Virus record (IMG/VR): IMGVR_UViG_3300009104_001210
Coordinates: 1 to 64,000 of that record
Reading direction: 5' to 3' (one strand)
Length of the DNA stretch: 64,000 nt
The position numbers and the translations under genes were made by a program. The notes beneath the pieces were generated by a model. That model was not told the DNA's origin and ran no database searches. It saw only the letters and a list, made by a program, of their open reading frames with translations. Each line of letters starts with the position of its first letter. The stretch's first letter is position 1. Below are positions 2,976-51,207 of the stretch, one piece after another.

Positions 2976-2987
2976 GGATAGTATCAT

Positions 2988-5209: not shown

Positions 5210-6793
5210 ATGGATAATAGGTTAGCAATAATTGTTCCTTATCGAGATAGAAGAAAACAGTTAGATGTTTTCATTCCGCATATGGATTCCTTTTTTCAAA
5301 ATAAAGGAATTGATTATCAGATAATAGTAGCAGAACAAAGAGATGATAGGCCTTTTAACAGAGGTAAATTATGTAACGCCGTGTTTGATTTAATTAAAGA
5401 CGACTTTGATTATTTTTGCTTTCACGACGTAGACTTGTTGCCATTAACAGATGATTGTGATTATTCTTATGTAGATAAACCAACTCATGTAGCAGCTATC
5501 ATTGACGATGTATATCTACCATATGAAGAGTTTATTGGTGGAGTATTCTTAATCAATAAAGAGCATTTCGAACAAATTAATGGATTTTCTGATGAATATT
5601 GGGGATGGGGATATGAAGATAATGATTTGTTAGAAAGAATGAGAAAAAATGATATTCCATTAAATACAGTTATAGATATTTCTTCTGTTTCAAAAAATCC
5701 AAGATATTCTTTTGATCAAGTACATTTACACAATAATTTTAAAACTAAGATATTAAATACTATTAAACTACATGGTGATATTTGTATAGAAGTACCAACA
5801 TCGGATTCTATAGATAATTTAACTAATGGTAGTTTTTCTTTTTCTATTTGGGCAAAACCAACAATAGAAGATTATGAACAATTTATATTATCAAGACCAC
5901 CAATTGGGTTAGGAATGTTATATACAGTAGAAGGTGAATTTAAATTTTTATTGTGGGATGAGAATGATGAAGCTCATGTTATAAAAGATTATAGAATACC
6001 AAATGAATGGTATCATTTATGTATGACATATGATACTAAAACTAAAATGTTTAGTGCATATATTAATGGTTCTTTAATAAAAACGATTAAAGTTGAATCA
6101 TTAAAAAACTTTAGTGGAGAGTGGTTTTATATTGGAGCAGATTCTTCTAATGAAAATAATTTTAGAGGAAGTGTTAGTGAAGCAACATTATGGAATGTTT
6201 GTTTAGATGAAAACGAAACTAAAAAATTATATTTTGAACAAGTAACTAATTTGATACATAGTCCAATAATGTGGCATAAGTTTGATAAGTGTTACGGAAG
6301 TTATATATTAGGTACAGAAGTTAATAGTGGAAATTTTCAAAAAATAAAAGTATATATTATGCTAGATGAATCTACTTATGAAAATAACGGAACAGTTAAA
6401 AGTTTTTCTAAGGAAATAAAACCTCTTCAATCGAAAGCTACAATAAATCCTATATTAGAAAAGATAATATTGGGTACTACTATAAAGATACCTAATAGAA
6501 GATATGGAATTTATAAAACTTTAGTTAATGATAAAACATGGAAAAGAGGAAGACAGGTTACAGATAAAGATTATGTTCATAGTAGAGTAAGACATTATAA
6601 GTCTACTGATGGAAAGGATATTGTAACTAAATTAAAATCATATGATCCAGATATTTTAGAAAATTCAGATATATTTTTTGATGAAGTTAGAGAAGGATCA
6701 GTGATTAATGTTGGTTTAAATAAATTAGATTATAAAGTTAGAAACAGACAAGAATTTGAAGATATTCATGAATGGATAGAAATAATAACATAG
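5210..6793 (+). CDS. GT7 (beta-1,4-galactosyltransferase-like) glycosyltransferase with inserted LamG domain
   Basis: LAIIVPYRDR, FNRGKLCN, FHDVD, GWGYEDND. LamG (FSFSIWAKP...WYHLCMTYD...YINGSL...YIGA...FRGSVSEATLWN). GT7 C-terminus resumes at IPNRRYG and ends GLNKLDY. Confidence 0.85.
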   Translation: MDNRLAIIVPYRDRRKQLDVFIPHMDSFFQNKGIDYQIIVAEQRDDRPFNRGKLCNAVFDLIKDDFDYFCFHDVDLLPLTDDCDYSYVDKPTHVAAIIDDVYLPYEEFIGGVFLINKEHFEQINGFSDEYWGWGYEDNDLLERMRKNDIPLNTVIDISSVSKNPRYSFDQVHLHNNFKTKILNTIKLHGDICIEVPTSDSIDNLTNGSFSFSIWAKPTIEDYEQFILSRPPIGLGMLYTVEGEFKFLLWDENDEAHVIKDYRIPNEWYHLCMTYDTKTKMFSAYINGSLIKTIKVESLKNFSGEWFYIGADSSNENNFRGSVSEATLWNVCLDENETKKLYFEQVTNLIHSPIMWHKFDKCYGSYILGTEVNSGNFQKIKVYIMLDESTYENNGTVKSFSKEIKPLQSKATINPILEKIILGTTIKIPNRRYGIYKTLVNDKTWKRGRQVTDKDYVHSRVRHYKSTDGKDIVTKLKSYDPDILENSDIFFDEVREGSVINVGLNKLDYKVRNRQEFEDIHEWIEIIT

Positions 6794-6801
6794 GAGTTGA
6801 T

Positions 6802-6981
6802 ATGATAAGTATTTTTAACGATGAAAAGAAAGTAATTGAGTTAGAAAGAATAGCGGATTGGTTACATTCTGCAACTTCAACTATGAAATTTAATAAAAGT
6901 ATGTCTCAATTTGTTATTTGGACAAATTTATTAAAATTAATGTTTACTAATGAAGTAGATAAGGAGAATACAAATGGCTAA
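6802..6981 (+). CDS. Hypothetical protein (59 aa)
   Basis: AGGAG RBS before ATG 6802 (track start 6772). Coupled to neighbours. Confidence 0.55.
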   Translation: MISIFNDEKKVIELERIADWLHSATSTMKFNKSMSQFVIWTNLLKLMFTNEVDKENTNG

Positions 6982-7186
6982 AACATTAGAAGAAAGAGGA
7001 GTAGATGCTTTAGAAAAGATATCTGAATCCTTACAAACTATAGAAGATGCCGTATTGGAGTTTGATGTTCCAGCATGGAGCGAAAGATTAGAATGGTATA
7101 TGAATGAATACTATGCTATTTTAAAAGCTAAAGTTGTTGGAAATCCAAATAGACCATCTCGTGATAGAGATGTAAATGAGTCATAA
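6974..7186 (+). CDS. Hypothetical protein (70 aa)
   Basis: AAGGAG RBS. Overlaps both neighbours. Confidence 0.65.
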   Translation: MAKTLEERGVDALEKISESLQTIEDAVLEFDVPAWSERLEWYMNEYYAILKAKVVGNPNRPSRDRDVNES

Positions 7187-8654
7187 TATAGGTCCACTCG
7201 GATTAAGATCACTTAATCCTAAGTTAGCAATAATAGTACCTTATAGAGATAGAAAGAAGCAGCTTGATAAATTTATAAAGCACATGACGAACTTCTTTCT
7301 AGATACGGATGTAAAGTATCATATATTTGTAATAGAACAAGAAGATGATAAACCATTTAATCAAGGAAAGTTATTAAATGTTGGGTTTTCTTTAGCAGAA
7401 CACGATTTTAATTATTTTTGTTTCCATGATGTAGATTTACTTCCCGAAAAGGATTGTGATTATTCGTATCCTGATGATAAACCATTACACTTAGGTGGGT
7501 TTACAAGTGAATATGATTACGAATTACAGTTTCAAGACTATTTTGGTGGAGTAACTTTGTTTAGAAAAGAAGATTATGAAGCAGCAAATGGTAGGTCAAA
7601 TAACTATTGGGGGTGGGGATTTGAAGATGATGATTTATTGTTTAGATGTAAACAAGCAGGACTTCCAATTGACACAAAGTTTTTTGGTGTAGCTAAAACA
7701 AACTGTTATTCTTATCTTGAGTTTGATGGATATGATGATTTTGTTGAAATAAAAGTTACAGATGAACTAAAAGAATTAACAAAAGATAGTTTCTCAGTAA
7801 CAGTTTCTATACATCCAGAATTACAACACCAAGTAGAAGATATTCCATACGATGAACATTTTGCTTTTTCTATACCTGGCTATCATTGTGGTTTATCTTA
7901 TACAAGTCATAGAAGATATAAAGCAGATATATTTGATTCTAATATAAAATCACAAGCAGTTCTTACAGATATAGAAACAGAATATTTTAATCATTTAACT
8001 ATGGTTTATAATAAGGAAATAGATAGATTTTTATTTTATCAAAATGGAAAATTAGTAGATTCTACAAGAATTGAAAAATTATATGATTATACTAAAGAAG
8101 AGTATTTATATTTAGGATGTGCTAATCCAGCAAATAAAGAATATTCATATAACTTTAAAGGTAAGATAGTAGAAGTTGCTATTTGGAATAACGCATTGGA
8201 TGAGGGAGATGTGAGTTCTTTATATAAAAATAATTTTGTAAGAAGTTTGACTACAAACTTTTTTGATTATAGAAGTTCGGAAAGCTTAGTTTTATATTAT
8301 GATTTTAAACATATAGTTGGAAATCAAGTTTTTGATAATAGTGGATGGTATAATAATGGTGTTATACATGGAGCAACTAACGGTAGTAAAATAGGCAAGA
8401 GAGGAAGATGGTTAACTGTACCTCATAGAAGATATGGTAGATATACTTCACAACAACATTCAAAATCAGCATGGGCAGCAGAAGGTTTACATTGGTTATA
8501 TTCAGAAACAAGAGATAATCAAACAAGATTTTTTAATAAAGTTAAAACAGGTTATGAAGATTGGCATATTGATGGATTAAATACTTTAAAATATTCATTA
8601 AATTCAAGAGAAGAGTTATCAGATAAAGCAACTATATTTAAAGTGGAATTATAA
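7176..8654 (+). CDS. GT7 glycosyltransferase with inserted LamG domain
   Basis: IIVPYRDR, FNQGKLLNVG, FHDVD, YFGGV, GWGFEDDD. LamG insert. Resumes TVPHRRYGRY...DGLNTLKY. Confidence 0.88.
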   Translation: MSHNIGPLGLRSLNPKLAIIVPYRDRKKQLDKFIKHMTNFFLDTDVKYHIFVIEQEDDKPFNQGKLLNVGFSLAEHDFNYFCFHDVDLLPEKDCDYSYPDDKPLHLGGFTSEYDYELQFQDYFGGVTLFRKEDYEAANGRSNNYWGWGFEDDDLLFRCKQAGLPIDTKFFGVAKTNCYSYLEFDGYDDFVEIKVTDELKELTKDSFSVTVSIHPELQHQVEDIPYDEHFAFSIPGYHCGLSYTSHRRYKADIFDSNIKSQAVLTDIETEYFNHLTMVYNKEIDRFLFYQNGKLVDSTRIEKLYDYTKEEYLYLGCANPANKEYSYNFKGKIVEVAIWNNALDEGDVSSLYKNNFVRSLTTNFFDYRSSESLVLYYDFKHIVGNQVFDNSGWYNNGVIHGATNGSKIGKRGRWLTVPHRRYGRYTSQQHSKSAWAAEGLHWLYSETRDNQTRFFNKVKTGYEDWHIDGLNTLKYSLNSREELSDKATIFKVEL

Positions 8655-9592
8655 TGGAAAAAATAAATAATATGAATGTTTTAATAACAGGAGGAGCGGG
8701 GTTTATAGGATCTACTTTTATTAAAAAATTACATAAATATCCTACTTTTGAAAAAGCTGGTAATTTTATATCTTTGGATAACTATTCTACAGGTACAAAA
8801 GATAATCATCTTAGAGATGATAAAAATAAAAAAATGACGGGTATAGAAGAAAAATATGTATCAGGAGATATTGGAAATCCACACCGTGATCCTGATGAAT
8901 ATAGGGAACTTGCTGGTGGTTGGGTACATTCTAGGAGAACAGGGGCAATATTTGATAATTTAATTGATTGTAATTTAACACAAGGAGATGAAAAGGAATA
9001 TGGAACACACCAAAGACTTGGTAATCCAGATTTAATAGTACATTTTGCTGATGTTCCAAGAATAACAGATACTACAAAACCATTTACAGAATATCAAAAT
9101 AAAGATTATCCATCAGATTTATTTGATACTAATGTTGTTGGAACTAAAAATATACTTGAATTTGCAAGACATGGACAGCAACCTGAAGATCGTGAAAAGA
9201 GAAAATCTTGGGGTTGGAAAAATATAGATTATTCACAAGTGTTTTATATTGGTTCTACTCCAGACAAAACTTTTTATCAGAATGATCACACATTTACTAA
9301 ATGGCAAGGAGAAGAATTGTGCAAATTTTATTATAAAACATTTGGTATGAATATTGGAATTTTTAAATTTGGAAAAGTTTTTGGTGATGAACATAAAATT
9401 CAAAAAGATAATAATTTTTATATAGGTGGTAAAGCAAGTGTTTATGATGTGGGATCAGGAGTTTATAATGATAAAGATAGAATACACGTTGATGATGTTT
9501 GTATGCAATTATTATCAATGATAGGTAAAGATCTTGGTGGAAAAACTTATCATTTAAGTGCTAATTTGGATTGGATGGATGAGTACTTATAA
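8654..9592 (+). CDS. NAD-dependent epimerase/dehydratase (extended SDR), atypical
   Basis: ITGGAGFIGS Rossmann motif. LDNYSTG; TNVVGT.NILE. The YxxxK position reads HTFTK. Confidence 0.75.
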   Translation: MEKINNMNVLITGGAGFIGSTFIKKLHKYPTFEKAGNFISLDNYSTGTKDNHLRDDKNKKMTGIEEKYVSGDIGNPHRDPDEYRELAGGWVHSRRTGAIFDNLIDCNLTQGDEKEYGTHQRLGNPDLIVHFADVPRITDTTKPFTEYQNKDYPSDLFDTNVVGTKNILEFARHGQQPEDREKRKSWGWKNIDYSQVFYIGSTPDKTFYQNDHTFTKWQGEELCKFYYKTFGMNIGIFKFGKVFGDEHKIQKDNNFYIGGKASVYDVGSGVYNDKDRIHVDDVCMQLLSMIGKDLGGKTYHLSANLDWMDEYL

Positions 9593-10607
9593 TAAATCAG
9601 ATATATTAAATTTTAAAAAACACTTTGATATAAAAACACAATCTCTTTTAACAAAAAATTTTAATGTAATACCTTATCATGAAAAAGTATTAACACCACT
9701 TATACAATCTTCAAAAAAGAACACAATTTTAAATTTAGGAGAATTTTTTGAAAATCAAATTTTTGATACAGCAAATTTGGTTAATCTTCATAAATTTTTA
9801 GAAAAAATAGGTTCATTAAATAATATTATATTGCTTAGTGAAGATTGTAATTTTGAAAAATTATATGAAGAGTGGTGTGAAAAAAGGAAAATTAAAAATA
9901 GAGTTAATGTTATTGGGTATCCATTTCTTTTTTATGAAAGAGCTAGAGAGTATCTTATATATTTTAAAGAGAATTACAAAATATTGAGATATGAAGATAG
10001 AGATGAGTTACCAACTAAAAAGTTTATGTGTTTAATGGGCAGAACAATGGAAGATAGAAATTCTCTTTATTATTTTTTTAAAAAAAGAGATTTATTTGAT
10101 AATAATTATATCAGTTATCTTGGTAGACGGATGATATTACCTGATAGTGGTAATATTAATTTAATAGGTATAGGAAATTCTACAGCAGAAACAGATAATT
10201 TAGGATTCTATTTTAAGGATTCTTATTTTTCAGTAATCCCAGAAACAGAACTTTGGTATGCTAGTCCACATTCATTATTTTTTACAGAAAAAACAACTAA
10301 AGTATTATATCATGGTCATCCGTTTATTATTTTGAGTTCTGTGGGAGCATTAAAACAATTAAGAGAGTGGGGATTCGAAACTTTTCCTGAATTATTTGAT
10401 GAAAGTTATGATGAGATAGAGAAACCATTTGATAGAATAGAGTTTATTAAAAAAGAAATTATGAAATTAATAACTATGGATGAAAAAAAATTATTAAAAT
10501 TATGTAAAAGTGTTGAAGATAAATGTATTCATAATAAAGAAGTTTTATTTAGTTTAAAAGTAATAGAAGAAAAAGTGTATAAAAAATTATCGAGTATGTG
10601 TATATGA
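9579..10607 (+). CDS. GT10-like (alpha-1,3-fucosyltransferase-motif) GT-B protein, paralogue 1
   Basis: KKFMCLMGR; YFSVIPET...FFTEKTTK..HGHPFI...GFETFPELFDESYD, resembling the GT10 Y.F....EN....Y.TEK motif. Start moved to ATG 9579. Confidence 0.55.
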   Translation: MSTYNKSDILNFKKHFDIKTQSLLTKNFNVIPYHEKVLTPLIQSSKKNTILNLGEFFENQIFDTANLVNLHKFLEKIGSLNNIILLSEDCNFEKLYEEWCEKRKIKNRVNVIGYPFLFYERAREYLIYFKENYKILRYEDRDELPTKKFMCLMGRTMEDRNSLYYFFKKRDLFDNNYISYLGRRMILPDSGNINLIGIGNSTAETDNLGFYFKDSYFSVIPETELWYASPHSLFFTEKTTKVLYHGHPFIILSSVGALKQLREWGFETFPELFDESYDEIEKPFDRIEFIKKEIMKLITMDEKKLLKLCKSVEDKCIHNKEVLFSLKVIEEKVYKKLSSMCI

Positions 10608-12070
10608 AAAGGAAAGGAGCAACAAAAAAATGGAAGGAAAAGAAAAAACTTCATGGAGAAATGTATGTAGATGCATTTGATACTGGAATTGAATATTATA
10701 GTTCTAATATAGGAAAAGAATTGAAATATTTAAAAGATGAATGGAATATGTCATATTTGGGAGTGATATGGGGATATGCAAAATCATTTAAAAAAGAAAC
10801 TTGGGATTGGTTAATAGAAAATACTTTTATATTTCCAGATGTAGCAAGATTAAAGAAAGATATATCAGATAGTTTACATCCAGAACTTTTTAATTTTTCA
10901 TATGAAGTGATAAAAAAATTAAATAAACATTTTATTACGATTATTGAAGATACTGAAGGTCATTGTATACAACTTAAAGTACCTGAAAAAGTACATAAAG
11001 TTTGTGAAAAAACAGAAATTCCTGTAGAAAAAATATTAATAATTACTAATGATATTAATGCTAAATCTGATTATGATAATTGGTTTGAAAAAATAAAAAA
11101 ATATGAAACAAAACTTAATATTGTAAGTTATCCTTGTTTTGTAAATAGAATGGTAGGGGATTTTTATGAAAAAATAGCAAAAAGTTTATATAAAGAACAT
11201 TCAAGTACTAGATTTGGTCGTACTACACTTGAATCGGGTATAACTATTCCTATTATTGATATTAAAGAACACATTTATAAACCGAAACGCAGATTAAAAC
11301 CAAATAAGAAATTTATATGTCTTATGGGAAGAGGTACAGATGATAGAAGTTTTTTTTGGGAATATTTTCAAAATGGTGTTAATGTTGATATTTTAAATAC
11401 AATGATTAAACGAATTAAATCCAGAAAATTATCTACAAAATGGGGGAAAGTTGTTGATCCAAAAACAAATTATATTTCTTTTGATGCTTTTAACTATGCA
11501 GTTTTTAAAACAAAACATAAGAAAGAGAACAAAGAAATAGCAAATTTATTACAAGAAAGTGGTCATATATCTTATGTTGCAGAAGATGTAATTTTAGAAA
11601 ATAGTTATGAAGATATAGATACTGGAAATTCCTTAACGCCCAGAGAAAATATTTTGTATGGTAGGTCAGGACCATTAACAGATAAGTTAGAATACTATTA
11701 TGAAGATTCTTATTTTTCTATAGTACCAGAATGTGTAAGTGGAACAATGTTATCAGAAAAGTGGGTAAAACCTATATATCATGGACACCCATTTATGATT
11801 TTATCGCCACTTGGGTGTGGAATATTAAAGAAGATGAGAGAGTGGGGATTTGAAACTTTTCCAGAAATATTTGATGAATCATATGATGAAATGGATAATA
11901 GATTAGATAGAGTGTCTCATATAGAAAATGAAATTTTAAGATTGTGTAAAATGGATATGAAAGAATTACAAAAGTTGCGTGATTCTGTATATGAAAAACT
12001 TGTCCATAATCAGAAAACTTTATTTGATATGAAATTAACACAAAAACCCTTTACGGATATATTAAAATGA
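10604..12070 (+). CDS. GT10-like GT-B protein, paralogue 2
   Basis: KKFICLMGR; YFSIVPEC...LSEKWVKP..HGHPFM...GFETFPEIFDESYD. ATGA overlap at 10604-10607. Confidence 0.55.
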   Translation: MKRKGATKKWKEKKKLHGEMYVDAFDTGIEYYSSNIGKELKYLKDEWNMSYLGVIWGYAKSFKKETWDWLIENTFIFPDVARLKKDISDSLHPELFNFSYEVIKKLNKHFITIIEDTEGHCIQLKVPEKVHKVCEKTEIPVEKILIITNDINAKSDYDNWFEKIKKYETKLNIVSYPCFVNRMVGDFYEKIAKSLYKEHSSTRFGRTTLESGITIPIIDIKEHIYKPKRRLKPNKKFICLMGRGTDDRSFFWEYFQNGVNVDILNTMIKRIKSRKLSTKWGKVVDPKTNYISFDAFNYAVFKTKHKKENKEIANLLQESGHISYVAEDVILENSYEDIDTGNSLTPRENILYGRSGPLTDKLEYYYEDSYFSIVPECVSGTMLSEKWVKPIYHGHPFMILSPLGCGILKKMREWGFETFPEIFDESYDEMDNRLDRVSHIENEILRLCKMDMKELQKLRDSVYEKLVHNQKTLFDMKLTQKPFTDILK

Positions 12071-27998: not shown

Positions 27999-28006
27999 TA
28001 TTTATA
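27999..28006 (+). promoter_or_regulatory. TATTTATA motif (putative promoter of the second island operon)
   Basis: Exact motif followed by TATGAG, at the head of a ~120-nt structured leader. Confidence 0.6.
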
Positions 28007-28007
28007 T

Positions 28008-43487: not shown

Positions 43488-44272
43488 ATGTAGTAGTTAT
43501 AGGAGATAGTTGTAATGATATTTTTATTTATGGAGACATAGAAAGAATAAGTCCAGAAGCACCTATACCAGTTTTTAAACCAACACATAAAGAATCAAAT
43601 GGTGGTATGGCAAAAAATGTTGTAAACAATGTAGAATCATTAGAAATGACTATCTATACAGTTACAAATGAAAATACAATTGTGAAAAAACGATATGTAG
43701 ATAATCGTTCAGGACAAATGGTATTAAGAGTTGATGAACATGATTATTGTGATAGAGTAGAAATAAAAAAATTACAAGGTATAAAAAATAATAAATTTAA
43801 ATCTTATGGGTTGGGTGGTAATATAGATAAAATTGATGCAATTATTATTTCAGATTATTGTAAAGGATTTTTAGAAGAAAGTGATATAGAACATATTTGT
43901 AAATACAATAAAAATGTATTCGTGGATACTAAAAAGAAACTCGGTAAGTGGATTAAAGACGCAGATTATATTAAAATAAATGAGTTAGAATATAAAAAGA
44001 ATTACGAGTTATTATCAGATAAAGGATTTAGAGATAAACTTATTGTTACATTAGGTAGTAAAGGTTGTAGATATAAAGGATTAGAATATCCAGTAAAAGA
44101 AGTTCCTGTAAGGGATGTAAGTGGAGCAGGGGATACATTTATTGCAGGATTAGTTCGTGGTTATTTAGATACCAATAACATATATGAAGCAATTAAGTTT
44201 GCACAGAAATGTACTACAGTAGTTGTACAGAAACATGGAGTTGCAACAGTTACATTAGAGGAGATTTTATGA
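43484..44272 (+). CDS. PfkB sugar kinase, HldE/RfaE domain I-like (heptose-7-phosphate kinase)
   Basis: RISPEAPIPV, GGMAKNV, IISDYCKG, VDTK, VTLGSKG, DVSGAGDTF. Confidence 0.88.
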   Translation: MNVVVIGDSCNDIFIYGDIERISPEAPIPVFKPTHKESNGGMAKNVVNNVESLEMTIYTVTNENTIVKKRYVDNRSGQMVLRVDEHDYCDRVEIKKLQGIKNNKFKSYGLGGNIDKIDAIIISDYCKGFLEESDIEHICKYNKNVFVDTKKKLGKWIKDADYIKINELEYKKNYELLSDKGFRDKLIVTLGSKGCRYKGLEYPVKEVPVRDVSGAGDTFIAGLVRGYLDTNNIYEAIKFAQKCTTVVVQKHGVATVTLEEIL

Positions 44273-44988
44273 AAGTTAAGTATTTAGCTTGGCCTTATGG
44301 AAAATTAGGAAGTAAAGAACGTCCAGAACTTACTGAATTAAAAGATGCTGGATATGAATTTTCAGATCCATTTGATGTTATAGATATTTTTGAGAAAAAA
44401 GTAGCAAAATTTGCAGGAAGTAAATATGCTTGTGCTGTAAATAGTTCAAGTAGTGGATTGTTTCTTTGTTTAAAATATTATTGGGATCAGTTTTATGGGA
44501 TGAGAAATTTTCCTCAAACAGTAAAAATTCCTGGTAGAACTTATGTTTCAGTTCCAATGACAATTATCAATGCAGGATATAAAGTAGAGTTTGAGGATTT
44601 AAAATGGAAAGGTATTTATCAATTAAAACCATATACTATATGGGATGGTGCTTGTAGATGGACAAAGGATATGTATGTTGGTGATAATGCTTTACAAATA
44701 GTATCTTTTAATATTAAAAAGAGAATACCAATAGGTGCAGGTGGAATGGTATTAACTGACGATAAAAAAGCATATGAATGGATAAAACTTGCAAGTCATG
44801 ATGGTCGTAATGTTAATGTTCATTATGGAGATGATGATTTTGCTATGATAGGATGGCATATGTATATGTTACCCGAAGATGCTGCTAGAGGAATATTATT
44901 AATGGATTCAGTACCAGAAGTAAACGAAGATGTTTATAGTTGGGAAAACTATTATGACGTATCAGATAAAGAGGTTTTTAATAAATAA
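44269..44988 (+). CDS. DegT/DnrJ/StrS aminotransferase, short form (~239 aa)
   Basis: FEKKVAKFAGSKYACAVNS, P..TYVSVP, WDGA, SFNIKKRIPIGAGGM. GAGGAG RBS before ATG 44269. Confidence 0.82.
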   Translation: MKVKYLAWPYGKLGSKERPELTELKDAGYEFSDPFDVIDIFEKKVAKFAGSKYACAVNSSSSGLFLCLKYYWDQFYGMRNFPQTVKIPGRTYVSVPMTIINAGYKVEFEDLKWKGIYQLKPYTIWDGACRWTKDMYVGDNALQIVSFNIKKRIPIGAGGMVLTDDKKAYEWIKLASHDGRNVNVHYGDDDFAMIGWHMYMLPEDAARGILLMDSVPEVNEDVYSWENYYDVSDKEVFNK

Positions 44989-45860
44989 TGGGACGAGGTA
45001 ATTTAACATTATATAATACTGAACACAAATCTTTTGAGTGGAATCAATTTCCTTTATTAATTGATACTAATAAAGTGGGTATTAGGGATCTTAAATGGCA
45101 CAGTACTGATAAAGAAGAATTCTTTAAAATGAATTTAGAAGAACTTGGTTCAGATTGGGAATATGCAGATAGTGAAAAAACATTGCGATATGATTTTAAT
45201 AGTTGGGGTTATAGAGCAAAAGAATTAGATTATTTAGATAAAGATAATATATTAGTAATGGGTTGTAGTATTACAGAAGGAGTTGGATTACATAAAAATG
45301 ATATATGGTGTCATCAACTTAGTCAAGCATTAGATATAGATATTTTAAATTTGGGTAAAGGGGGAGTTGGACCAGATACTCTTTATATTAATACTGTTTT
45401 ATTTATTAAAAACATATATCCAAAACTCAGAAAGAAAAAACCAAATTTAATAATTTATCAATGGCCTCAAAGTTTTAGAAGAAGTTTTGCTTATGTTAAT
45501 GTTAATTATGATAAAAAAACTACAGATTTAGAGTTTACACATTATAATATAAATACGGTAGCTAGTGATAGAGATTATACTTGGTTTAGAACAAGATATT
45601 TGAGAGAAAATGGTGAAATGTATAGAGATCATTATATTAATTTTTGTGCAATAAATAATATGTGGAAAGCATTAGATATACCTGTTTTACATTGGTCTTA
45701 TTTACAAGATTTTGAATTACAGTTAGATATTAAAAGTGTACAAAAGGTAGAAATAACAAGTCAGAATAAGGATAAAGCTAGAGATTTAAAACATGATGGT
45801 AAGTTAGCACACAGCCAAGTAGTAGACGAATTAATACCTAATGTAAAGAAAATGTTATGA
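44988..45860 (+). CDS. SGNH/GDSL-fold protein
   Basis: FNSWGYR, MGCSITEG, NLGKGG, ARDLKHDG..AH. Confidence 0.6.
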   Translation: MGRGNLTLYNTEHKSFEWNQFPLLIDTNKVGIRDLKWHSTDKEEFFKMNLEELGSDWEYADSEKTLRYDFNSWGYRAKELDYLDKDNILVMGCSITEGVGLHKNDIWCHQLSQALDIDILNLGKGGVGPDTLYINTVLFIKNIYPKLRKKKPNLIIYQWPQSFRRSFAYVNVNYDKKTTDLEFTHYNINTVASDRDYTWFRTRYLRENGEMYRDHYINFCAINNMWKALDIPVLHWSYLQDFELQLDIKSVQKVEITSQNKDKARDLKHDGKLAHSQVVDELIPNVKKML

Positions 45861-47002
45861 GTGAAGGATTAGTTAATAAAGCGCAATATCATTTTGAAAG
45901 ATTAAATGATACTATTAATGGTAGTAGAATGCCTGTTCCTTTGAGTCTTGAGTTACAAATAACTAATACTTGCCATCAAGCCTGCTATTATTGTAATTCA
46001 GAAATATTTAGAGAACATAATCCTGATAAAGCAACTACTGAAGATTGGATAAATTTTATAGATAATTTACCTGAAGGAATTAAAGATGTTACCTTTTCGG
46101 GAGGTGGAGAACCATTAGATCATTTAGATGCAGATAAAATTATAAATTATGTTTTACATAAGGGATATAAGGTAGGATTGATAACTAATGGAGCAAGATT
46201 TAGACATTTAAATTTTACAAAAGAATATAGACCAAATTGGGTAGGTATTGATTTTGATACTGCAGATTCTAAAAAATATTTTCAAATAAGAAAAGGTAAT
46301 TTAGAAAAAGTAAAGAAAAGTATTTCTGAAAAAATGAGTGAGTTTCAAAGTTATGGTACTTTTTTTACTTATAAAGTTTTAATTAATGATTATAATTCAG
46401 AAATAGAAGATTTAAAAGCTAGCGTTGATTTAGCAGTAGAAATGGGATTTGATGAATATTTTCAGAGAATAGTTTATTTTGGTTATAGAACAGAAGATAT
46501 GGAAGGAGCAGGTAATAGAACATTAAAACCACCTAAAGGATATACGTGGGAAGAAGTTGAAAATGAAGTTAGAGATTATTGTGAAAAGAAAGGAATTTCA
46601 TATAAAGGTACATTTGGAAAACAAAGGCATTCTAAATTAATTAGAAATGCTGATTCCAATATAGAAAATTATGAATGGAATGAATCAACTCAAACTCATA
46701 TGGTAAAACAATGTTTTGCACCTTTATTTTATGTGGTTGTTAATTCAAACGGTGATATTTTGTGGTGCTGTGAACATTTAGGAAATAAAGATTATGTGGT
46801 AGATAATTGGATAGATAATGGATTATCATTTTTAGAAGAAAAGGGATTACTTGATAAAATGAAAAATTTTATTGATTGGAGAAAATGTGATAGTCAATGT
46901 AGATATTATGATTATAATAAGTTTTCAGCTAGAGTTAGTGATGGTTATTACAAGTATTCAGAAAATGAAATAAGAACAGGTCATGAAAAAGGATTTTTTT
47001 AA
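45857..47002 (+). CDS. Radical SAM protein with C-terminal SPASM/twitch domain
   Basis: NTCHQACYYC; SGGGEPL; ITNG; CFAP...NGDILWCC...CDSQCR. Confidence 0.88.
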   Translation: MSEGLVNKAQYHFERLNDTINGSRMPVPLSLELQITNTCHQACYYCNSEIFREHNPDKATTEDWINFIDNLPEGIKDVTFSGGGEPLDHLDADKIINYVLHKGYKVGLITNGARFRHLNFTKEYRPNWVGIDFDTADSKKYFQIRKGNLEKVKKSISEKMSEFQSYGTFFTYKVLINDYNSEIEDLKASVDLAVEMGFDEYFQRIVYFGYRTEDMEGAGNRTLKPPKGYTWEEVENEVRDYCEKKGISYKGTFGKQRHSKLIRNADSNIENYEWNESTQTHMVKQCFAPLFYVVVNSNGDILWCCEHLGNKDYVVDNWIDNGLSFLEEKGLLDKMKNFIDWRKCDSQCRYYDYNKFSARVSDGYYKYSENEIRTGHEKGFF

Positions 47003-48021
47003 TGGTAAGAGTTAATAACGAATGGGATAGGTTAAGAGAAGTATTCGTTGGTACAGTAGAAAATGCAAATAATCCAATTAAGGGTAAAGATTTACATGCG
47101 ATTAATTATGCAGATAAAAATAATATAGATGATGTAAAAGAGGGTTATTATCCTGAACAAGTTATAGAAGAAACAAAAGAAGATTTAGATATTCTTGTAC
47201 AATCTTTAAAATCTTTTTTTGATATTAAAGTTCGTAGAATGAAACCGAATCAAAATAATAAAATATTTCAAACAATTGATTGGGTTTCAGATGGATATTA
47301 TACATTTTGTCCGAGAGATAGTGTTACAGTAATTGGAGATACGATTATAGAATCACCAATGACGTTACGTTCACGATATTTTGAGACATTTGGATTTAGA
47401 GATCAGTTTATTGAGTATATGGAAGATGGTGCAAGGTGGGTATCAGCACCAAAACCAAGATTAACCGATGATAATTATCAAAGAAGAGATTTAACTAAAT
47501 TAACACTTACAAATGTAGAACCCGTTTTTGATGCGGCTAACATTTTACGGTGTAATAAAGATATATTATATTTATTATCGAACACAGGTAATAAACTTGG
47601 TGCAAAATGGTTACAAAACTTTTTAGGTGATGAATATAAGGTTCATGTTCTTGAAAATATGTATTCTTATGTTCATATTGATTCAACTATAGCACTTTTA
47701 AGGGAAGGATTGTGTTTATTGAACCCAGAAAGAGTGAATGATGACAATATGCCTGAAATTTTAAAGTCGTGGGATAAGATTTGGTGTCCACCTTGTGTAG
47801 ATATTGGATATTATGGTAATTTTAACCACGCATCTACTTGGATTGGGTTAAATTTGTTATCAATTGATGAAAATACTGTTATTGTAGATGAAAGTCAAGT
47901 AGAGTTACATAAATTATTGAAAAAGCATAATGTTGATAGTTTACCATTACGAATAAGACATTCGAGAACACTTGGTGGCTCATTTCATTGTGTAACTACG
48001 GATATACATAGGCAAAGTTAA
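47002..48021 (+). CDS. Amidinotransferase (glycine or inosamine-phosphate amidinotransferase family)
   Basis: NEWDRLREVFVG, CPRD, HIDSTI, RTLGGSFHCVT (Asp/His/Cys catalytic set). Confidence 0.92.
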   Translation: MVRVNNEWDRLREVFVGTVENANNPIKGKDLHAINYADKNNIDDVKEGYYPEQVIEETKEDLDILVQSLKSFFDIKVRRMKPNQNNKIFQTIDWVSDGYYTFCPRDSVTVIGDTIIESPMTLRSRYFETFGFRDQFIEYMEDGARWVSAPKPRLTDDNYQRRDLTKLTLTNVEPVFDAANILRCNKDILYLLSNTGNKLGAKWLQNFLGDEYKVHVLENMYSYVHIDSTIALLREGLCLLNPERVNDDNMPEILKSWDKIWCPPCVDIGYYGNFNHASTWIGLNLLSIDENTVIVDESQVELHKLLKKHNVDSLPLRIRHSRTLGGSFHCVTTDIHRQS

Positions 48022-48022
48022 T

Positions 48023-49309
48023 ATGGAAAAAGTAATCATAGTAAATCCCGACGCTAAAATGGATGCAAAGCAATTTGCATATGCACCTTTGGGTCCATTA
48101 TACATTGCGGCTGTCTTAGAAAGAGATGGTTTCGAATGTGAGTTGTGGGATTTAAGAGAAGATTACAATTCTTATGATAATCCACCAAAAGGTGATATCT
48201 ACTGTATCACTGCCGTTACACCACAAATAGATGATATGAAAGAAGTGGCTCGTAACATTAAAAAGAAGTATGGTGATAAAGCATATACAATTTTAGGTGG
48301 CCCACACGCAACTTGGTTACCAGATGATTGTGTTGACCATTTTGATTGTGTAGTTCAAGATGAAGCTGAAGGAATTATAACCAAAATATGTACAGAGAAA
48401 CCAACAGGTGTTCAAAGAGGTGATAGGATTGTTGATTTAGATACAATACCACATCCAGCAAGGCACTTACTTCCCGACCATAGAGCAGCAAGTACAGATT
48501 TGTGGGGTGGATATAACTACGAAAGTAATGTGATTGGTGCGACACTTATGTCAAGTAGAGGTTGTCCTTTCGCCTGTGCCTTTTGTGCCAACCTACAACA
48601 AAAAACAAGATTTAGAAGTGCAGAAAATGTTATAGAAGAAATAGAACTAATGATTGAAAAGTATGGTGTAAAACATTTTAGATTCTTAGATGACAATATA
48701 ATCATAGATAAGAAAAGGTTTGAAAGATTAGCACCAATGTTACACGAATTAGATATTAGGTTTAGATGTTCGATTAGTTCAGTATTATTAAATGATGAGT
48801 ATTGTGAATTATTATATCACGCAGGATGTAGAGAGGTTGGTATAGGTTTTGAATCGGCAGATGACGACATACTAAAACTTATTAATAAAGCTGGTAAAGC
48901 AACCAACAATATGCACAAAGATGCAGTTCAAGTTATACAGAAGTGGGGAATGAAAGCTAAGGTTTATATTATTACAGGTTTACCTGGTGAAACAAAAGAA
49001 TCAATAGAAGCAACAAAGAAGTTTGTATTAGATTTAAAACCCGATAAGTGGATTTGTTTATTATTCACACCATATCCTGGTACACCTATTTATATGAATC
49101 CTGATTTCTATGGTGTAGAGATAATACATAAAAGGTTTAGAGAATATGTTCAGTCTTACCCATCAAAGAGTCATGTAAATCTTAAAAAGATAGGTAATGG
49201 TGAGATATTGGCAACAAATAAAGATTTAGAAGAAAGGTTTGAAGATTTGTATCATTGGTTAAACAAATTAAATCCAGAATCTATGGAGTATAGTTCTTTT
49301 AATGGATAA
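48023..49309 (+). CDS. B12-binding radical SAM protein (class B methyltransferase-like)
   Basis: APLGPLYIAA, GGPHAT, SRGCPFACAFC, IGFESAD, ITGLPGET. Confidence 0.9.
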   Translation: MEKVIIVNPDAKMDAKQFAYAPLGPLYIAAVLERDGFECELWDLREDYNSYDNPPKGDIYCITAVTPQIDDMKEVARNIKKKYGDKAYTILGGPHATWLPDDCVDHFDCVVQDEAEGIITKICTEKPTGVQRGDRIVDLDTIPHPARHLLPDHRAASTDLWGGYNYESNVIGATLMSSRGCPFACAFCANLQQKTRFRSAENVIEEIELMIEKYGVKHFRFLDDNIIIDKKRFERLAPMLHELDIRFRCSISSVLLNDEYCELLYHAGCREVGIGFESADDDILKLINKAGKATNNMHKDAVQVIQKWGMKAKVYIITGLPGETKESIEATKKFVLDLKPDKWICLLFTPYPGTPIYMNPDFYGVEIIHKRFREYVQSYPSKSHVNLKKIGNGEILATNKDLEERFEDLYHWLNKLNPESMEYSSFNG

Positions 49310-49312
49310 TTT

Positions 49313-49738
49313 ATGATAATGGCAATTTTATATAATAAAAGTTATAAAGATATTGCAGTTAGTACAAGAGAAGAAATAATTAATTATTTTTCTCATATGC
49401 CTGGAAAGAAGAATACACCACATCGGTTGGTATCAGATCATAAAAATTTCGTAGATAATTTTCAAATGGAATCACGTAATACATTTGATGTTTTTGAAGT
49501 TTATATAAAAGGGCCTCAAGATAAAAATGCAGAATATAATGAAATTTGGCCAAAAAACTATGTTACAACTGTTTTTAGTAAAAGAGAACTTAATAGATTG
49601 CCAAAAGAAAATGAAATAATAGAAACTTTAGATACGATATCTGATTTTGAAAAAGGTCTTTATATAAGAAGAAGAGTTATAGTTGAAGGCGCAGATATAA
49701 GGGATCCAAGTGATCCAGGAGTAGAACATTTGGTATGA
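49313..49738 (+). CDS. Hypothetical protein
   Basis: 141-aa ORF coupled to the next gene (ATGA overlap). No recognised motif. Confidence 0.65.
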   Translation: MIMAILYNKSYKDIAVSTREEIINYFSHMPGKKNTPHRLVSDHKNFVDNFQMESRNTFDVFEVYIKGPQDKNAEYNEIWPKNYVTTVFSKRELNRLPKENEIIETLDTISDFEKGLYIRRRVIVEGADIRDPSDPGVEHLV

Positions 49739-51207
49739 GAATATTTGGTTTTAATGCATTGAATCATGATGCAGCTTTAAGTGTTATAGAAGATGGTGAA
49801 ATACTTTTCGCAGGTCATTCAGAAAGATATAGTGGTAAAAAGTTTGATGCTGAATTAAATGAAGAAATGGTACACGAAGCGCTTTCATATGGAATGCCTG
49901 ATAAGGTAGCATGGTTTGAAAAACCATATCTTAAAAAGACAAGACAACTTTGGGCAGGTCAATACGGAGAAGTATTTAATACATCTAATATTCCATCTCA
50001 ATATCTAAAACAATTCGGTATATATAATAAAGTTCAGTATGTTCCACATCATTTATCTCATGCTTCAGCAGGATATTACACTTCACCTTATGATGAAGCG
50101 GCAATTGTAGTTATAGATGCTATTGGTGAATGGGATGTAATGTCTATATGGTATGGGTGTGGAAATAAATTAGAAAAACGTTGGTCAAAGAAGTATCCAC
50201 ATTCACTTGGGTTATTTTATTCAGCTATGACACAAAGACTTGGATTGAAACCACAAGAAGATGAATATATTCTAATGGGAATGGATGCTTGGGGTCAGAG
50301 AGATAAAAAAATAAAAAATAGAATATATGATGATTTAATTAGAACTCGTATGAATCTTCATCGAGGATGTTCGGCTTGGGATTTAGATTTTTATCCTGAC
50401 GATGATAGTGATAAGTGGAAATTTGATGTAGCAGCAAATGTACAATGGATATGTGAAGAAGAAATCCAAAAAATATTTAAATTAACACAACGGTTAGTAC
50501 CCGAAACTAAAAATTGTGTTTATATGGGTGGAGTAGCATTGAATTGTGTAGCTAATTCAATTATAGCAAAAGATTATTATCCTAATTTATGGATATTTCC
50601 AAATCCAGGAGATGCAGGTTCATCACTTGGTTGTGCGGCATATGTATATGGTGAACATATTAATTGGAAAACACCATTTACAGGATATAATATAAAAGGT
50701 GAGTACCCTGTTACTCAAGTGAGTAAAGAACTACTCAAGGGAAATATAGTTGGTGTGGCAAATGGTAAAGCAGAATTTGGACCAAGAGCATTAGGGAATA
50801 GAAGTTTACTTGCTGACCCAAGAGGTGATGATATAAAAGATAAAGTAAACAAAATTAAACATAGACAAGAATTTAGACCTTTTGCACCATCTGTATTAGA
50901 GGAATATGCACATGAAATCTTTGATATGCCTGTTCGGAAATCTCAGTTTATGCAGTTTGTAGCAGATTGTAAGTATCCTGAAAAATATCCTGCTATTTGT
51001 CATGTGGATGGAACTTCAAGAGTTCAGACGGTAAGTAAAGATGATAATCCTGCTTATTATGAGTTAATAAAACAATTTTTTGAAGAAACAAGGTGTCCTA
51101 TGGTATTAAACACAAGTTTAAACATAAAAGGACAGCCAATTGTTAATGATGAGACAGATGCTTTAGATTTTCAAAAGCGTTATGGAGTAAAGGTTTTTAC
51201 TAAATAA
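49735..51207 (+). CDS. O-carbamoyltransferase (NodU/CmcH/TobZ family)
   Basis: NHDAA, HHLSHAS, GGVALNCVAN, GDAG, EFGPRALGNRS, FRPFAP, HVDGTSRVQTV, LNTSLN. Confidence 0.93.
   Translation: MRIFGFNALNHDAALSVIEDGEILFAGHSERYSGKKFDAELNEEMVHEALSYGMPDKVAWFEKPYLKKTRQLWAGQYGEVFNTSNIPSQYLKQFGIYNKVQYVPHHLSHASAGYYTSPYDEAAIVVIDAIGEWDVMSIWYGCGNKLEKRWSKKYPHSLGLFYSAMTQRLGLKPQEDEYILMGMDAWGQRDKKIKNRIYDDLIRTRMNLHRGCSAWDLDFYPDDDSDKWKFDVAANVQWICEEEIQKIFKLTQRLVPETKNCVYMGGVALNCVANSIIAKDYYPNLWIFPNPGDAGSSLGCAAYVYGEHINWKTPFTGYNIKGEYPVTQVSKELLKGNIVGVANGKAEFGPRALGNRSLLADPRGDDIKDKVNKIKHRQEFRPFAPSVLEEYAHEIFDMPVRKSQFMQFVADCKYPEKYPAICHVDGTSRVQTVSKDDNPAYYELIKQFFEETRCPMVLNTSLNIKGQPIVNDETDALDFQKRYGVKVFTK

Follow-up and report, generated by a model that had tools for sequence, protein, structure and literature searches.

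The region analysed was a window of 64 000 nt (positions 1 to 64 000 of IMG/VR record IMGVR_UViG_3300009104_001210) from the 216-kb genome of a marine T4-like phage. Between tail-fibre genes and packaging/head genes, positions 5210–51207 hold 44 ORFs, all on the + strand, as are all other features described below. This island occupies about a fifth of the genome and runs from the start of the first GT7-LamG ORF to the stop of a carbamoyltransferase ORF. It comprises 42 ORFs of at least 80 aa plus two conserved small ORFs; 41 of 43 junctions overlap or lie within 3 nt, the only gaps being of 88 and 134 nt. Its left neighbour (154–1851) is a tail fibre with a C-terminal Peptidase_S74 intramolecular chaperone (PF13884, E = 1e-11). 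The island probably begins further upstream, at about 2007, with two Hint-domain proteins and a GT4-motif protein. The first (2007–2975; C158 ... HN-T) and the second (4029–5144; Hint/BIL, C193 ... HN-K) are paralogues with a Ser/Thr-rich N-domain followed by a Hint (intein-like) domain, the Pfam Hint matches of the former being weak. The gene between them (2988–3992) is a candidate GT-B glycosyltransferase on the basis of motifs only (an N-terminal GGG motif and EPFGxxxxEA; no Pfam hit), but it always lies between the Hint proteins in relatives.

Three proteins (5210–6793, 7176–8654 and 12067–13479) are fusions of GT7 (beta-4-GalT-like GT-A with a DVD motif) and a LamG/ConA-like lectin domain; in the first, the Pfam 7N, 7C and Laminin_G_3 matches are all above cut-off. 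Between the first two lie a small ORF of 69 aa (6772–6981) and a conserved small helical protein of 70 aa (6974–7186), which was found immediately before GT7-LamG genes in every related locus examined (tblastn, 39–59% identity in 27 loci, some of them overlapping pieces of the same contig). A MAFFT alignment of 17 copies shows a helical core and no conserved Cys, Ser or Thr-rich core peptide. Six further proteins (9558–10607, 10598–12070, 23583–25154, 25151–26701, 26698–27978 and 31580–32680) form a new paralogue family without Pfam match. The AF2 model of the last one (pLDDT 85.6) matched only GT-B glycosyltransferases in Foldseek searches, and one BFVD homologue is fused to a UGDH domain. 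Two other proteins are transferase candidates at the motif level only: 16325–17047 has a weak DUF115/MptE-like (Maf-type) hit, and 42336–43487, an unknown protein without family or PDB hit, has an 'HIRR' motif reminiscent of GT23/65/68 fucosyltransferases. The number of transferases is therefore 9 solid cases and about 11 at most.

Nine radical SAM enzymes were confirmed, each with Pfam or NCBIfam support and a single CX3CX2C motif. Four are N-terminal-twitch enzymes of NCBIfam N_Twi_rSAM (NF033640, cut-off 170 bits): 13479–15008 (310 bits), 15097–16332 (384 bits), 17632–19083 (298 bits) and 22331–23599 (314 bits). Three are of the B12 class: a large 743-aa enzyme of the B12-dependent methyltransferase class (20100–22331; NCBIfam class hits all below cut-off, Pfam Radical_SAM), a B12-binding enzyme whose best match, far below that model's cut-off, is the KedN5 C-methyltransferase family (35321–37294), and a B12-binding enzyme (48023–49309) that is 94% identical in a relative whose terminase is 79% identical. 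The remaining two have no assigned subfamily (19076–20110) or a weak C-terminal SPASM/twitch domain (45857–47002).

Nucleotide-sugar enzymes are represented by an RmlC-like NDP-4-keto-6-deoxyhexose 3,5-epimerase (28113–28631; E = 4e-29), four SDR proteins and two UGDH-like proteins. The SDR proteins are a divergent epimerase/dehydratase (8654–9592; Pfam Epimerase, E = 3e-11), an NDP-sugar epimerase/dehydratase (30649–31587; E = 1e-35) and two NDP-sugar dehydratase/epimerase/reductase enzymes (39842–41712; E = 2e-29 and 1e-50). Of the UGDH-like proteins, one is short (33254–34087) and one is a full-length UDP-Glc/GDP-Man dehydrogenase (34054–35331); the short form recurs in other viral cassettes, and it is replaced in a near-identical strain. 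An RfaE-domain-I-like sugar(-phosphate) kinase (43484–44272) is followed by a short DegT/PseC/LegC-like aminotransferase (44209–44988). A split thiamine-diphosphate enzyme (PP-domain subunit 29557–30150, Pyr-domain subunit 30135–30680; Pfam E1_dh and Transket_pyr), 87–96% identical in relatives, is a candidate for forming two-carbon branches. The amidinotransferase (47002–48021) is strongly supported: it scores 376 bits (phmmer, E = 1e-111) against the full length of StrB1 (PDB 1bwd), with about half the residues identical and the catalytic FHC, HxDS and FDAAN motifs conserved. The NodU/CmcH-type carbamoyltransferase (49735–51207; Pfam, E = 6e-57 and 1e-37) closes the island.

Two 2OG-Fe(II) oxygenases were confirmed (37266–37958 and 41702–42343, of P4H-type family PF13640), whereas a third candidate, a cupin-like protein (37864–38469), rests only on an HxD...H motif. 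Evidence for SGNH proteins is weak, being limited to a GDSF motif in 17034–17666 and to distant similarity of 44988–45860 (blastp E = 1e-5 to a DUF6071 protein; weak NCBIfam hit) and 28628–29569 (motifs and weak blastp only) to DUF6071, which carries SGNH-type motifs. The two small enzymes at 16325–17666 are both absent from two related islands. The other products are a MORN_2 repeat protein (32661–33257), a protein with a ParB/Srx-like N-domain (weak hits) and a class-I aminotransferase-like C-terminal motif (38469–39845), and an unknown 141-aa protein (49313–49738). No Pfam hit to an exporter or initiating transferase was obtained, and no 19-residue hydrophobic segment was found in any island protein.

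The motif TATTTATA occurs 9 times on the + strand of the window. Five copies lie in the 1041 intergenic bases, where about 0.15 would be expected from position alone (about 30-fold enrichment): at 3993–4000, at 5181–5188 (29 nt before the first island gene), at 27999, at 56804–56811 (before the operon of a small protein and the large terminase, the latter with a TerL Pfam hit) and at 60577–60584 (after portal and before the head-assembly genes; Pfam hits to portal and prohead protease). The motif thus precedes both island operons as well as the terminase and head operons, and it is conserved in relatives. At the start of the second operon (27999–28112), the TATTTATATATGA motif is followed by a conserved leader of ~110 nt with a perfect 8-bp hairpin, for which no Rfam hit was found.

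The initial annotation had named a chimera of phage and host loci as a possible refutation. The contig is not a chimera: codon usage of the island correlates with that of the flanks (r = 0.94 and 0.89), and contigs from four other metagenomes carry the same island flanked by the same phage genes. A core cassette recurs next to tail-fibre or head genes in several T4-like contig groups and consists of a small 64–82 aa protein, then two to three GT7-LamG genes, then an N_Twi radical SAM enzyme, then the GT-B-like protein. It lies directly downstream of tail-fibre genes (PHROG tail-fibre hits down to E = 2e-50) and, in another T4-like contig group, downstream of portal, gp23 and gp13. In one other phage, however, a radical SAM cassette with the GT-B-like and SGNH-like genes sits among DNA ligase and PNKP genes and not near fibres, and single-copy N_Twi genes in bacteria have uninformative neighbours. 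Near-identical strains (96–99% nt identity) differ by precise loss or replacement of tailoring genes; for example, the pair at 37266–38469 is precisely absent from one of them.

The observation made in the initial annotation, an island of about 45 co-oriented, coupled genes lacking exporter and initiating transferase and sharing an intergenic motif with the terminase and prohead operons, is real, although only two of its three oxygenases are solid, its three SGNH calls are weak, 9 of its 11 transferases are well supported and the conserved core (the small protein, GT7-LamG, N-terminal-twitch radical SAM enzymes and the predicted GT-B family) was not recognized. Its interpretation, a late pathway making an unusually modified glycan for virion armour or host-surface remodelling, is supported only in part: the island is phage-encoded, carries sugar-nucleotide, glycosyl-transfer and many tailoring enzymes (C-methylation, two-carbon branching, amidination and carbamoylation are all plausible at family level), lacks membrane or export parts, shares a promoter-like motif with the packaging and head operons and sits beside tail-fibre genes, but late timing is inferred from the motif only and no acceptor was identified, which leaves the choice between the two proposed roles undecided.

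We tentatively favour, without regarding it as established, a pathway of entirely soluble proteins, probably transcribed with the virion genes, that would convert host nucleotide sugars into rare, heavily tailored sugars and assemble them into a complex glycan on a soluble acceptor, most likely proteins of the phage's own tail-fibre or host-recognition apparatus or another virion protein. In this view, two operons would start at the TATTTATA motifs at 5181 and 27999, and the UGDH-like, SDR, RmlC-like, aminotransferase and kinase enzymes would make 6-deoxy, uronic and amino sugars. Tailoring would follow, with addition of a two-carbon branch by the split thiamine-diphosphate enzyme, C-methylation by B12-radical SAM enzymes, hydroxylation by 2OG oxygenases, conversion of an amine into a guanidine by the StrB1-like enzyme, O-carbamoylation by the NodU-type enzyme and handling of acyl groups by SGNH-like proteins. 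The three GT7-LamG and six GT-B-fold transferases would then build the chain, with the conserved 70-aa protein as a partner of GT7-LamG, and the four N-terminal-twitch radical SAM enzymes and their companion would perform further radical chemistry on nucleotide sugars or on the glycan. The family or fold assignments, solubility, the motif, the synteny and the strain-level gene swaps rest on the analysis itself, whereas substrates, the order of steps, timing and the acceptor are inferences. The gene swaps are as expected for a surface-exposed structure under diversifying selection, and the Hint-domain proteins, with their Ser/Thr-rich N-domains and a GT-like gene between them, are possible acceptors. 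However, many O-antigen glycosyltransferases are also soluble peripheral proteins, so the absence of membrane segments does not exclude work on host lipid-linked intermediates, and this island has no sugar nucleotidyltransferase, although related islands have NTP_transferase and CTP_transf_3. Also against this view, the closest structural neighbours of the N_Twi model include both nucleotide-acting and peptide-acting radical SAM enzymes.

Several alternatives remain possible but appear less likely. The phage might supply rare nucleotide sugars and peripheral glycosyltransferases to the host's own undecaprenyl-linked LPS or capsule machinery and so change the cell surface during infection, for example to block superinfection or to prevent progeny from adsorbing to debris. 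The enzyme repertoire is what O-antigen and capsule loci contain, related islands carry NeuB, a CMP-sugar synthetase and a sulfotransferase, cassette swapping resembles O-antigen locus evolution, and this is the published interpretation for pelagimyophage host-recognition clusters (PMC7029224). We nevertheless consider it unlikely, since the 44 genes include no initiating transferase, flippase, polymerase, ligase or ABC exporter and no membrane segment, the shared motif suggests late expression, when surface change would bring little benefit, and the consistent linkage is to fibre and head genes. More doubtful still is a soluble aminoglycoside-like or orthosomycin-like pseudo-oligosaccharide natural product, made during infection, that might act on the host's translation or on competitors. 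The StrB1-like amidinotransferase, with a kinase, an aminotransferase and a radical SAM enzyme beside it, matches the logic of guanidino-cyclitol formation, and the NodU/TobZ-type carbamoyltransferase, B12-radical SAM, RmlC-like, split TPP-enzyme and 2OG-oxygenase genes all have counterparts in aminoglycoside and orthosomycin clusters. In addition, a mini-module in the cultured cyanophage S-SCSM2R was labelled 'antibiotic synthesis genes'. But no cyclitol-forming enzyme (inositol-phosphate or 2-deoxy-scyllo-inosose synthase) was detected by Pfam or NCBIfam searches, there is no exporter or self-resistance gene, at least nine glycosyltransferases, three of them with lectin domains, suggest a polymer or a glycoconjugate, and linkage to fibre genes would be unexplained.

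Equally doubtful is RiPP-like radical tailoring (epimerisation, C-methylation, cross-links) of a phage structural protein or small peptide, with the sugars a separate function or only part of the chemistry. SPASM/twitch enzymes commonly act on peptides, sub-threshold NCBIfam hits include RiPP C-methyltransferases and peptide maturases, structural neighbours of the N_Twi model include CteB, anSME, SuiB and EpeE, and conserved small ORFs sit inside the cassette. On the other hand, N_Twi genes are always accompanied by glycosyltransferase-like genes, even in the minimal cassette, the best structural neighbours are viperin and MoaA, which act on nucleotides, the list also includes the sugar-acting DesII, BlsE and AprD4, and the conserved small protein lacks features of a core peptide (see above). 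DNA hypermodification, the alternative given in the initial annotation, is the least likely. Phages do attach diverse glycans to hydroxymethylated bases (preprint 10.1101/2023.12.21.572611), T4 DNA glucosyltransferases have the GT-B fold, a DNA beta-glucosyltransferase appears among weak structural matches (probability 0.66), one radical SAM cassette lies near DNA ligase in another phage, and amidinotransferase homologues occur in Campylobacter phages, a group known for modified DNA. Yet within the 64-kb window, which excludes the remaining 152 kb of the contig, there is no hydroxymethylase, DNA methyltransferase, TET/JBP-type oxygenase, DpdA or DNA kinase of the thymidine pathways, that is, no base-activating enzyme; the two oxygenases belong to P4H-type PF13640, the cassette is linked to fibre and head genes in most loci, and LamG lectin fusions and nine transferases are unlike any known DNA-glycosylation system.

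The conserved gene core has no described function, and no cultured phage carries GT7-LamG, so that virion proteomes offer no check on the proposed role. Mycobacteriophages and giant viruses glycosylate their own virions (Freeman 2023, cited in PMC12619734), and islands of this general kind, with glycosyltransferase genes and radical SAM cassettes next to tail fibres, have already been reported in marine T4-like phages (PMC7029224, PMC5332604).

The sequence analysed is positions 1-64000 of IMG/VR contig IMGVR_UViG_3300009104_001210, which is 216 422 bp long. Every ORF of 125 aa or more except one lies on the + strand, GC content is 0.26-0.38 and GC skew is steady. To the right of the island lie a P-loop kinase, a GH108 endolysin, a 1097-aa protein with one cytidylyltransferase-like domain (52977-56270, +), a T4-type large terminase (TerL), a gp20 portal and a gp21 prohead protease; to its left lie a tail fibre with an S74 chaperone domain and two Hint-domain proteins. 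The 1097-aa protein, which is outside the island and most of which has no domain match, is conserved across the whole lineage, and its apparent counterpart in phage immuto is annotated as NadR/NMN adenylyltransferase. The closest cultured phages by portal are Microcystis phage Mel-JY01 (52%) and Flavobacterium phage immuto (54%); both share the backbone from the cytidylyltransferase-domain protein through terminase to portal, and both lack the island. The lineage is common in marine metagenomes, with 380 terminase matches in IMG/VR.

The initial annotation had described a block of about 45 co-oriented, coupled genes between 5210 and 51207, and this observation held. The block contains 42 ORFs of at least 80 aa and two small ORFs, all co-oriented, and 41 of its 43 junctions overlap or are within 3 nt. 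Nine radical SAM proteins were confirmed, each with one CX3CX2C motif. Four of them (ORFs are named here by their start coordinates: 13479, 15097, 17632 and 22331) score 298-384 bits against NCBIfam NF033640 (N_Twi_rSAM; curated cut-off 170 bits) and carry an N-terminal four-to-five-cysteine domain that Pfam reads as SPASM, in which C17, C35, C77 and C80 are invariant and C36 is nearly invariant. Three others (20100, 35321 and 48023) belong to the B12-dependent class; the best match of 35321 is the KedN5 C-methyltransferase family, at 255 bits against a cut-off of 700. Three paralogous proteins are fusions of a GT7 (beta-4-galactosyltransferase-like GT-A) catalytic domain with a Laminin_G_3/ConA-like lectin domain; both Pfam halves are above the gathering score (Glyco_transf_7N, 52-86 bits; Glyco_transf_7C, 61-70 bits) and each protein has a DVD motif of the DXD type. 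Sugar-nucleotide and related enzymes comprise an RmlC-like epimerase, four SDR epimerase/dehydratases, one full-length and one short UDP-glucose dehydrogenase-like (UGDH) protein, a split thiamine-diphosphate (TPP) enzyme, two P4H-type 2OG-Fe(II) oxygenases, an RfaE-domain-I-like kinase and a short DegT/PseC-like aminotransferase. The kinase (262 aa) and the aminotransferase (259 aa), which together occupy 43484-44988 (+), are much shorter than their family models and overlap by 64 nt, so that they could be trimmed functional forms or decaying genes; the kinase is absent from two related islands. A NodU/CmcH-type carbamoyltransferase was also confirmed, as was an amidinotransferase (47002) that Pfam missed. 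The latter aligns over its full length and without gaps to StrB1, the inosamine-phosphate amidinotransferase of streptomycin biosynthesis (PDB 1bwd), with 376 bits, E 1e-111 and about half the residues identical, and the catalytic Cys, His and Asp motifs (FHC, HxDS and FDAAN) are conserved.

Six proteins with no family hit (9558, 10598, 23583, 25151, 26698 and 31580) form a single paralogue family. An AlphaFold2 model of 31580 (pLDDT 85.6) matches only GT-B glycosyltransferases in the PDB, namely BshA, SdgB, MshA and a GT10 fucosyltransferase, at probability 0.97-0.98. In BFVD it matches many uncharacterised phage proteins and one Mimivirus-like giant-virus protein at E down to 4e-13, with weaker matches to other giant-virus proteins; one of these is fused to a UGDH domain. 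Membership of the GT10 fucosyltransferases was considered but is not supported at the sequence level: no member matches any Pfam family, Glyco_transf_10 included, better than E 0.005, none of the weak matches is a glycosyltransferase family, a profile search of the PDB gave no hit, and the 120 best of 133 metagenomic relatives carry no Pfam domain or name. The similarity to GT-B enzymes, including FUT13, is at the level of the predicted fold only, and the family is therefore treated here as having a GT-B fold without an assigned family.

Other assignments made in the initial annotation proved weaker. Its third oxygenase (37864) rests on an HxD...H motif only, its three SGNH proteins (17034, 28628 and 44988) rest on block-I-like motifs and distant similarity to DUF6071, and 42336 and 16325 are transferase candidates by motif or a weak hit only. 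Single-sequence PDB searches with 42336, 28628, 44988, 38469, 37864, 17034 and 16325 gave nothing significant. Apart from one Rossmann N-terminus, no protein of the 44 has a 19-residue window with a mean hydropathy of 1.6 or more, and no initiating phosphoglycosyl transferase, flippase, polymerase or ABC exporter was hit in Pfam or NCBIfam. This island also has no sugar nucleotidyltransferase.

The motif TATTTATA occurs nine times on the + strand. Five copies fall in the 1041 intergenic bases: at 3993, before the second Hint gene; at 5181, 29 nt before the first island gene; at 27999, before the second island operon; at 56804, before the terminase operon; and at 60577, after portal. The extended form TATTTATATATGA is conserved at the two island positions in related contigs. 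This supports co-regulation with the morphogenesis genes, although the timing of expression is itself an inference. The longer 12-mer motif with one mismatch allowed was not enriched window-wide; only the positional test of the 8-mer was informative. A sigma-70 promoter scan showed no enrichment (135 sites against 136 expected). A leader of about 110 nt between the promoter-like motif and the RmlC-like gene (27999-28112, +) is nearly identical in related contigs (L084:4198-4311, L085:2225-2338 and L086:2373-2487) whose flanking proteins are about 71% identical, and ends in a perfect 8-bp hairpin just before the ribosome-binding site; however, it folds no better than shuffled sequence (z = −1.5), and Rfam and tRNA scans found nothing.

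The possibility that the contig is a chimera of phage and host DNA, which the initial annotation had named as a refuting condition, was rejected. Codon usage of the island correlates with both flanks (r = 0.94 and 0.89) and its GC3 is 0.15 against 0.18 and 0.15. Four other IMG/VR contigs from different samples carry the island in the same order, between homologues of the Hint genes on the left and of the endolysin and terminase genes on the right, at 44-99% protein identity. Genes have been gained and lost among relatives whose TerL is about 79-80% identical, yet some island genes are far more conserved than the terminase, for example 39842 at 99%, 29557 at 95-96% and 48023 at 94%. In comparisons with L084, L085 and L037 (a further contig), the genes at 29557-30680, 39842-40807 and 48023-49309 are 87-99% identical at protein level where the terminase is 79% identical and neighbouring island genes are 57-80% identical, which suggests recent recombination or unusually strong constraint. 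Exchange of tailoring genes is seen at strain level, since contig L086, which is 96-99% identical in nucleotide sequence, precisely lacks 37269-38465 (the 2OG oxygenase plus the cupin-like gene) and replaces 33277-34080 (the short UGDH) with another GT-B-like paralogue.

Searches with the N_Twi and GT7-LamG proteins found a recurring arrangement in many other viral contigs: a tail-fibre protein (PHROG tail-fibre hits down to E 2e-50), a few small genes and a methyltransferase, a 64-82 aa protein, two or three GT7-LamG genes, an N_Twi radical SAM enzyme and a GT-B-like protein, followed variably by an SDR, RmlC, the TPP subunit, the short UGDH, an amidinotransferase, a sulfotransferase, NeuB and nucleotidyltransferases. 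In one abundant group this block directly follows portal, prohead protease, gp23 and gp13. The 43-kb contigs were at first considered to be small phages, but they are fragments of T4-like genomes. The small helical protein (core pattern ER.V.ALE..IA.S....D...W.ER..Y..E), represented here by 6974-7186 (+) and in related viral loci by, for example, L206:9798-9989, L217:9536-9766 and L217:9784-10011, lies immediately before a GT7-LamG gene in every locus examined, at 39-59% identity, which is higher than the identity between the transferases themselves. It has no assigned family and may be a partner, an adaptor or an acceptor. The idea that its C-terminal Pro-rich tail is the glycosylation site was set aside because the tail is missing from many homologues.

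GT7-LamG has no homologue in 50 697 GenBank phage records, and N_Twi has only 20-26% relatives there (KVP40-like vibriophages, K566, RsoM2USA and a marine single-cell viral record); the context in Vibrio phage K566 consists entirely of hypothetical proteins. In cellular genomes N_Twi is mostly single-copy, in Bacteroidota, Bdellovibrionota and Elusimicrobia, and the neighbours of single-copy genes in cultured bacteria (Reichenbachiella, Hoeflea) are uninformative, being regulators, YaaA, proline racemases and an ABC transporter. Two contigs from a Haliscomenobacter sp. MAG (L107 and L109) do hold multi-copy N_Twi cassettes with GT-B-like genes and a carbamoyltransferase, arranged as in viral contigs L100, L101 and L104; as they are binned as a bacterial genome, they may be prophage or mis-binned viral DNA. 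Another phage (L105:7598-16069 and L106) carries a compact cassette of a GT-B-like gene, two N_Twi radical SAM genes, three other radical SAM genes and a DUF6071 gene with SGNH-type motifs, next to DNA ligase and PNKP genes and without GT7-LamG or sugar-nucleotide genes. The N_Twi model (pLDDT 86.4) is closest to viperin, CteB, anSME and MoaA, with DesII, BlsE and AprD4 further down the list; this is compatible with nucleotide-linked sugar substrates but does not decide the question. Literature searches found no paper on N-terminal-twitch radical SAM enzymes and no described function for the family.

The initial annotation read the island as a late pathway making an unusually modified glycan for virion armour or host-surface remodelling, and this interpretation is partly supported. 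That the island is a phage-encoded pathway for an unusually tailored glycan or glycoconjugate is well supported, whereas the choice of target is tentative. We favour phage virion or host-recognition proteins because of the repeated linkage to fibre and head genes in several T4-like contig groups, the promoter motif shared with the morphogenesis genes, a fully soluble enzyme set, lectin-fused transferases, strain-level diversification and the neighbouring Hint-domain proteins. The latter (2007-5144, +) are two paralogues with Ser/Thr-rich N-domains followed by a Hint/bacterial-intein-like domain (Cys at the junction, HN at the end, C-terminal extensions of only 5 and 21 residues), with a gene carrying GT4-type motifs between them (2988); the trio is conserved to the left of the island in relatives, one copy is preceded by TATTTATA, and the two proteins may be auto-processed acceptors or carriers. 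By hhalign, 2988 is not related to the GT-B-like family. The gene layout, the family, motif and predicted-fold matches, the positions of the promoter-like motif, the synteny and the strain-level gene exchange come directly from the sequences, whereas every function is inferred from family or fold, and late expression and the attachment of a glycan to any capsid, tail or fibre protein are inferences made without expression, proteomic or chemical data.

Remodelling of host LPS or capsule through the host's own machinery, the published view for pelagimyophage islands (PMC7029224), is considered unlikely. Less likely still is radical tailoring of a protein by the radical SAM cassette, although this does not exclude the favoured reading, and the same weight is given to a soluble aminoglycoside-like or orthosomycin-like product. 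The latter echoes the label 'antibiotic synthesis genes' given to a mini-module of cyanophage S-SCSM2R (PMC12801897) and agrees with the StrB1-type amidinotransferase and its catalytic triad, but neither a cyclitol-forming enzyme (myo-inositol-phosphate synthase or 2-deoxy-scyllo-inosose synthase) nor resistance or export genes were found in Pfam or NCBIfam searches. DNA hypermodification is the least likely: no enzyme that would create an attachment point on the base (dNMP hydroxymethylase, or DNA methyltransferase plus TET/5mYOX) was found among all 59 ORFs of at least 80 aa on the + strand of the window, which leaves 152 kb of the contig unseen, and the oxygenases are PF13640, not Tet_JBP.

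A bolder reading, which we regard as unlikely but not excluded, is that the conserved core of the 64-82 aa helical protein, GT7-LamG transferases, N-terminal-twitch radical SAM enzymes and the Pfam-less GT-B family defines a virus-specific glycosylation machine. In this view radical SAM enzymes would remodel the sugars of a glycan attached to tail-fibre or virion proteins, and rapid swapping of the tailoring genes would give marine T4-like phages a variable glycan coat, which would be a new class of post-translational modification and a new role for radical SAM chemistry. If the product does sit on virions, abundant marine phages would be shown to invest up to a fifth of their genome in a variable sugar coat, with consequences for host recognition, for resistance to grazing or enzymes and for how adsorption is modelled. 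The island also brings together at least four uncharacterised but widespread protein families, namely N_Twi radical SAM enzymes (at least 1151 clusters), GT7-LamG transferases (at least 1461 clusters), the GT-B-like family and the small partner protein, and their conserved genomic association gives a concrete starting point for assigning their chemistry. The StrB1-like amidinotransferase and the split TPP enzyme point to guanidino and branched sugars, which are rare in biology.

Compared with bacterial O-antigen and capsule loci (Wzx/Wzy- or ABC-dependent), the island likewise combines nucleotide-sugar modification genes and several glycosyltransferases in one operon-like block with strain-level cassette exchange, but all membrane steps are missing: the initiating phosphoglycosyl transferase, flippase, polymerase, chain-length regulator and exporter. 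With streptomycin-type guanidino-cyclitol biosynthesis it shares the amidinotransferase and an adjacent kinase and aminotransferase, but it has no cyclitol synthase and no resistance or export genes among those detected, and many more glycosyltransferases. The mini-module of the cultured cyanomyovirus S-SCSM2R (PQ898602, 229-236 kb; PMC12801897) has a similar gene set: a 2OG oxygenase, four to five glycosyltransferases including a GT2, a short DegT/AHBA-type aminotransferase, a radical SAM enzyme, a second 2OG oxygenase and an inosamine-type amidinotransferase 45% identical to 47002. However, it spans about 8 kb rather than 46 kb, has no GT7-LamG, is not among the isolates with distant N_Twi-like matches, and lies among photosynthesis and auxiliary genes rather than beside fibres; its authors regard the role of the genes as unclear. 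It offers an experimental handle, and the virion proteome of this phage reportedly contains another amidinotransferase and a prolyl-dihydroxylase-like protein (PMC12801897). In the virion glycosylation systems of mycobacteriophages (Freeman 2023) and of giant viruses (Mimivirus fibrils, chloroviruses), as in the pathway inferred here, the virus encodes its own soluble glycosyltransferases and sugar-nucleotide enzymes, the genes lie near structural genes and the host export machinery is not needed. Those systems use one to a few transferases and conventional sugars, none is known to have radical SAM, amidino or carbamoyl tailoring, and the one relationship seen here is structural, in that the GT-B-like family has structural relatives in Mimivirus-like genomes.

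The closest counterparts are the 'host recognition clusters', or LPS-like hypervariable islands, of marine T4-like phages (pelagimyophages and cyanomyophages; Zaragoza-Solas 2020, PMC7029224) and the T4-like environmental genome with 12 radical SAM genes (Nishimura 2017, PMC5332604), so that large islands of this kind are already known. The published work assigns no function to the radical SAM genes and proposes host O-chain modification. In the literature searched, we did not find the conserved core of small protein, GT7-LamG, N_Twi radical SAM enzyme and GT-B-like family, any function for these families, or a StrB1-like amidinotransferase, a split TPP enzyme and a carbamoyltransferase together in a 46-kb, 44-gene block. 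The present island agrees with the published ones in lying next to tail-fibre genes of a T4-like genome (a large variable region of 34-45 kb), in containing glycosyltransferases, deoxy-sugar and other sugar-nucleotide genes and radical SAM cassettes, and in diverging gradually between related genomes by gain and loss of cassettes; it differs in belonging to another lineage and in its transferases, which are GT7-LamG and a novel family with a predicted GT-B fold instead of the GT8 reported there.
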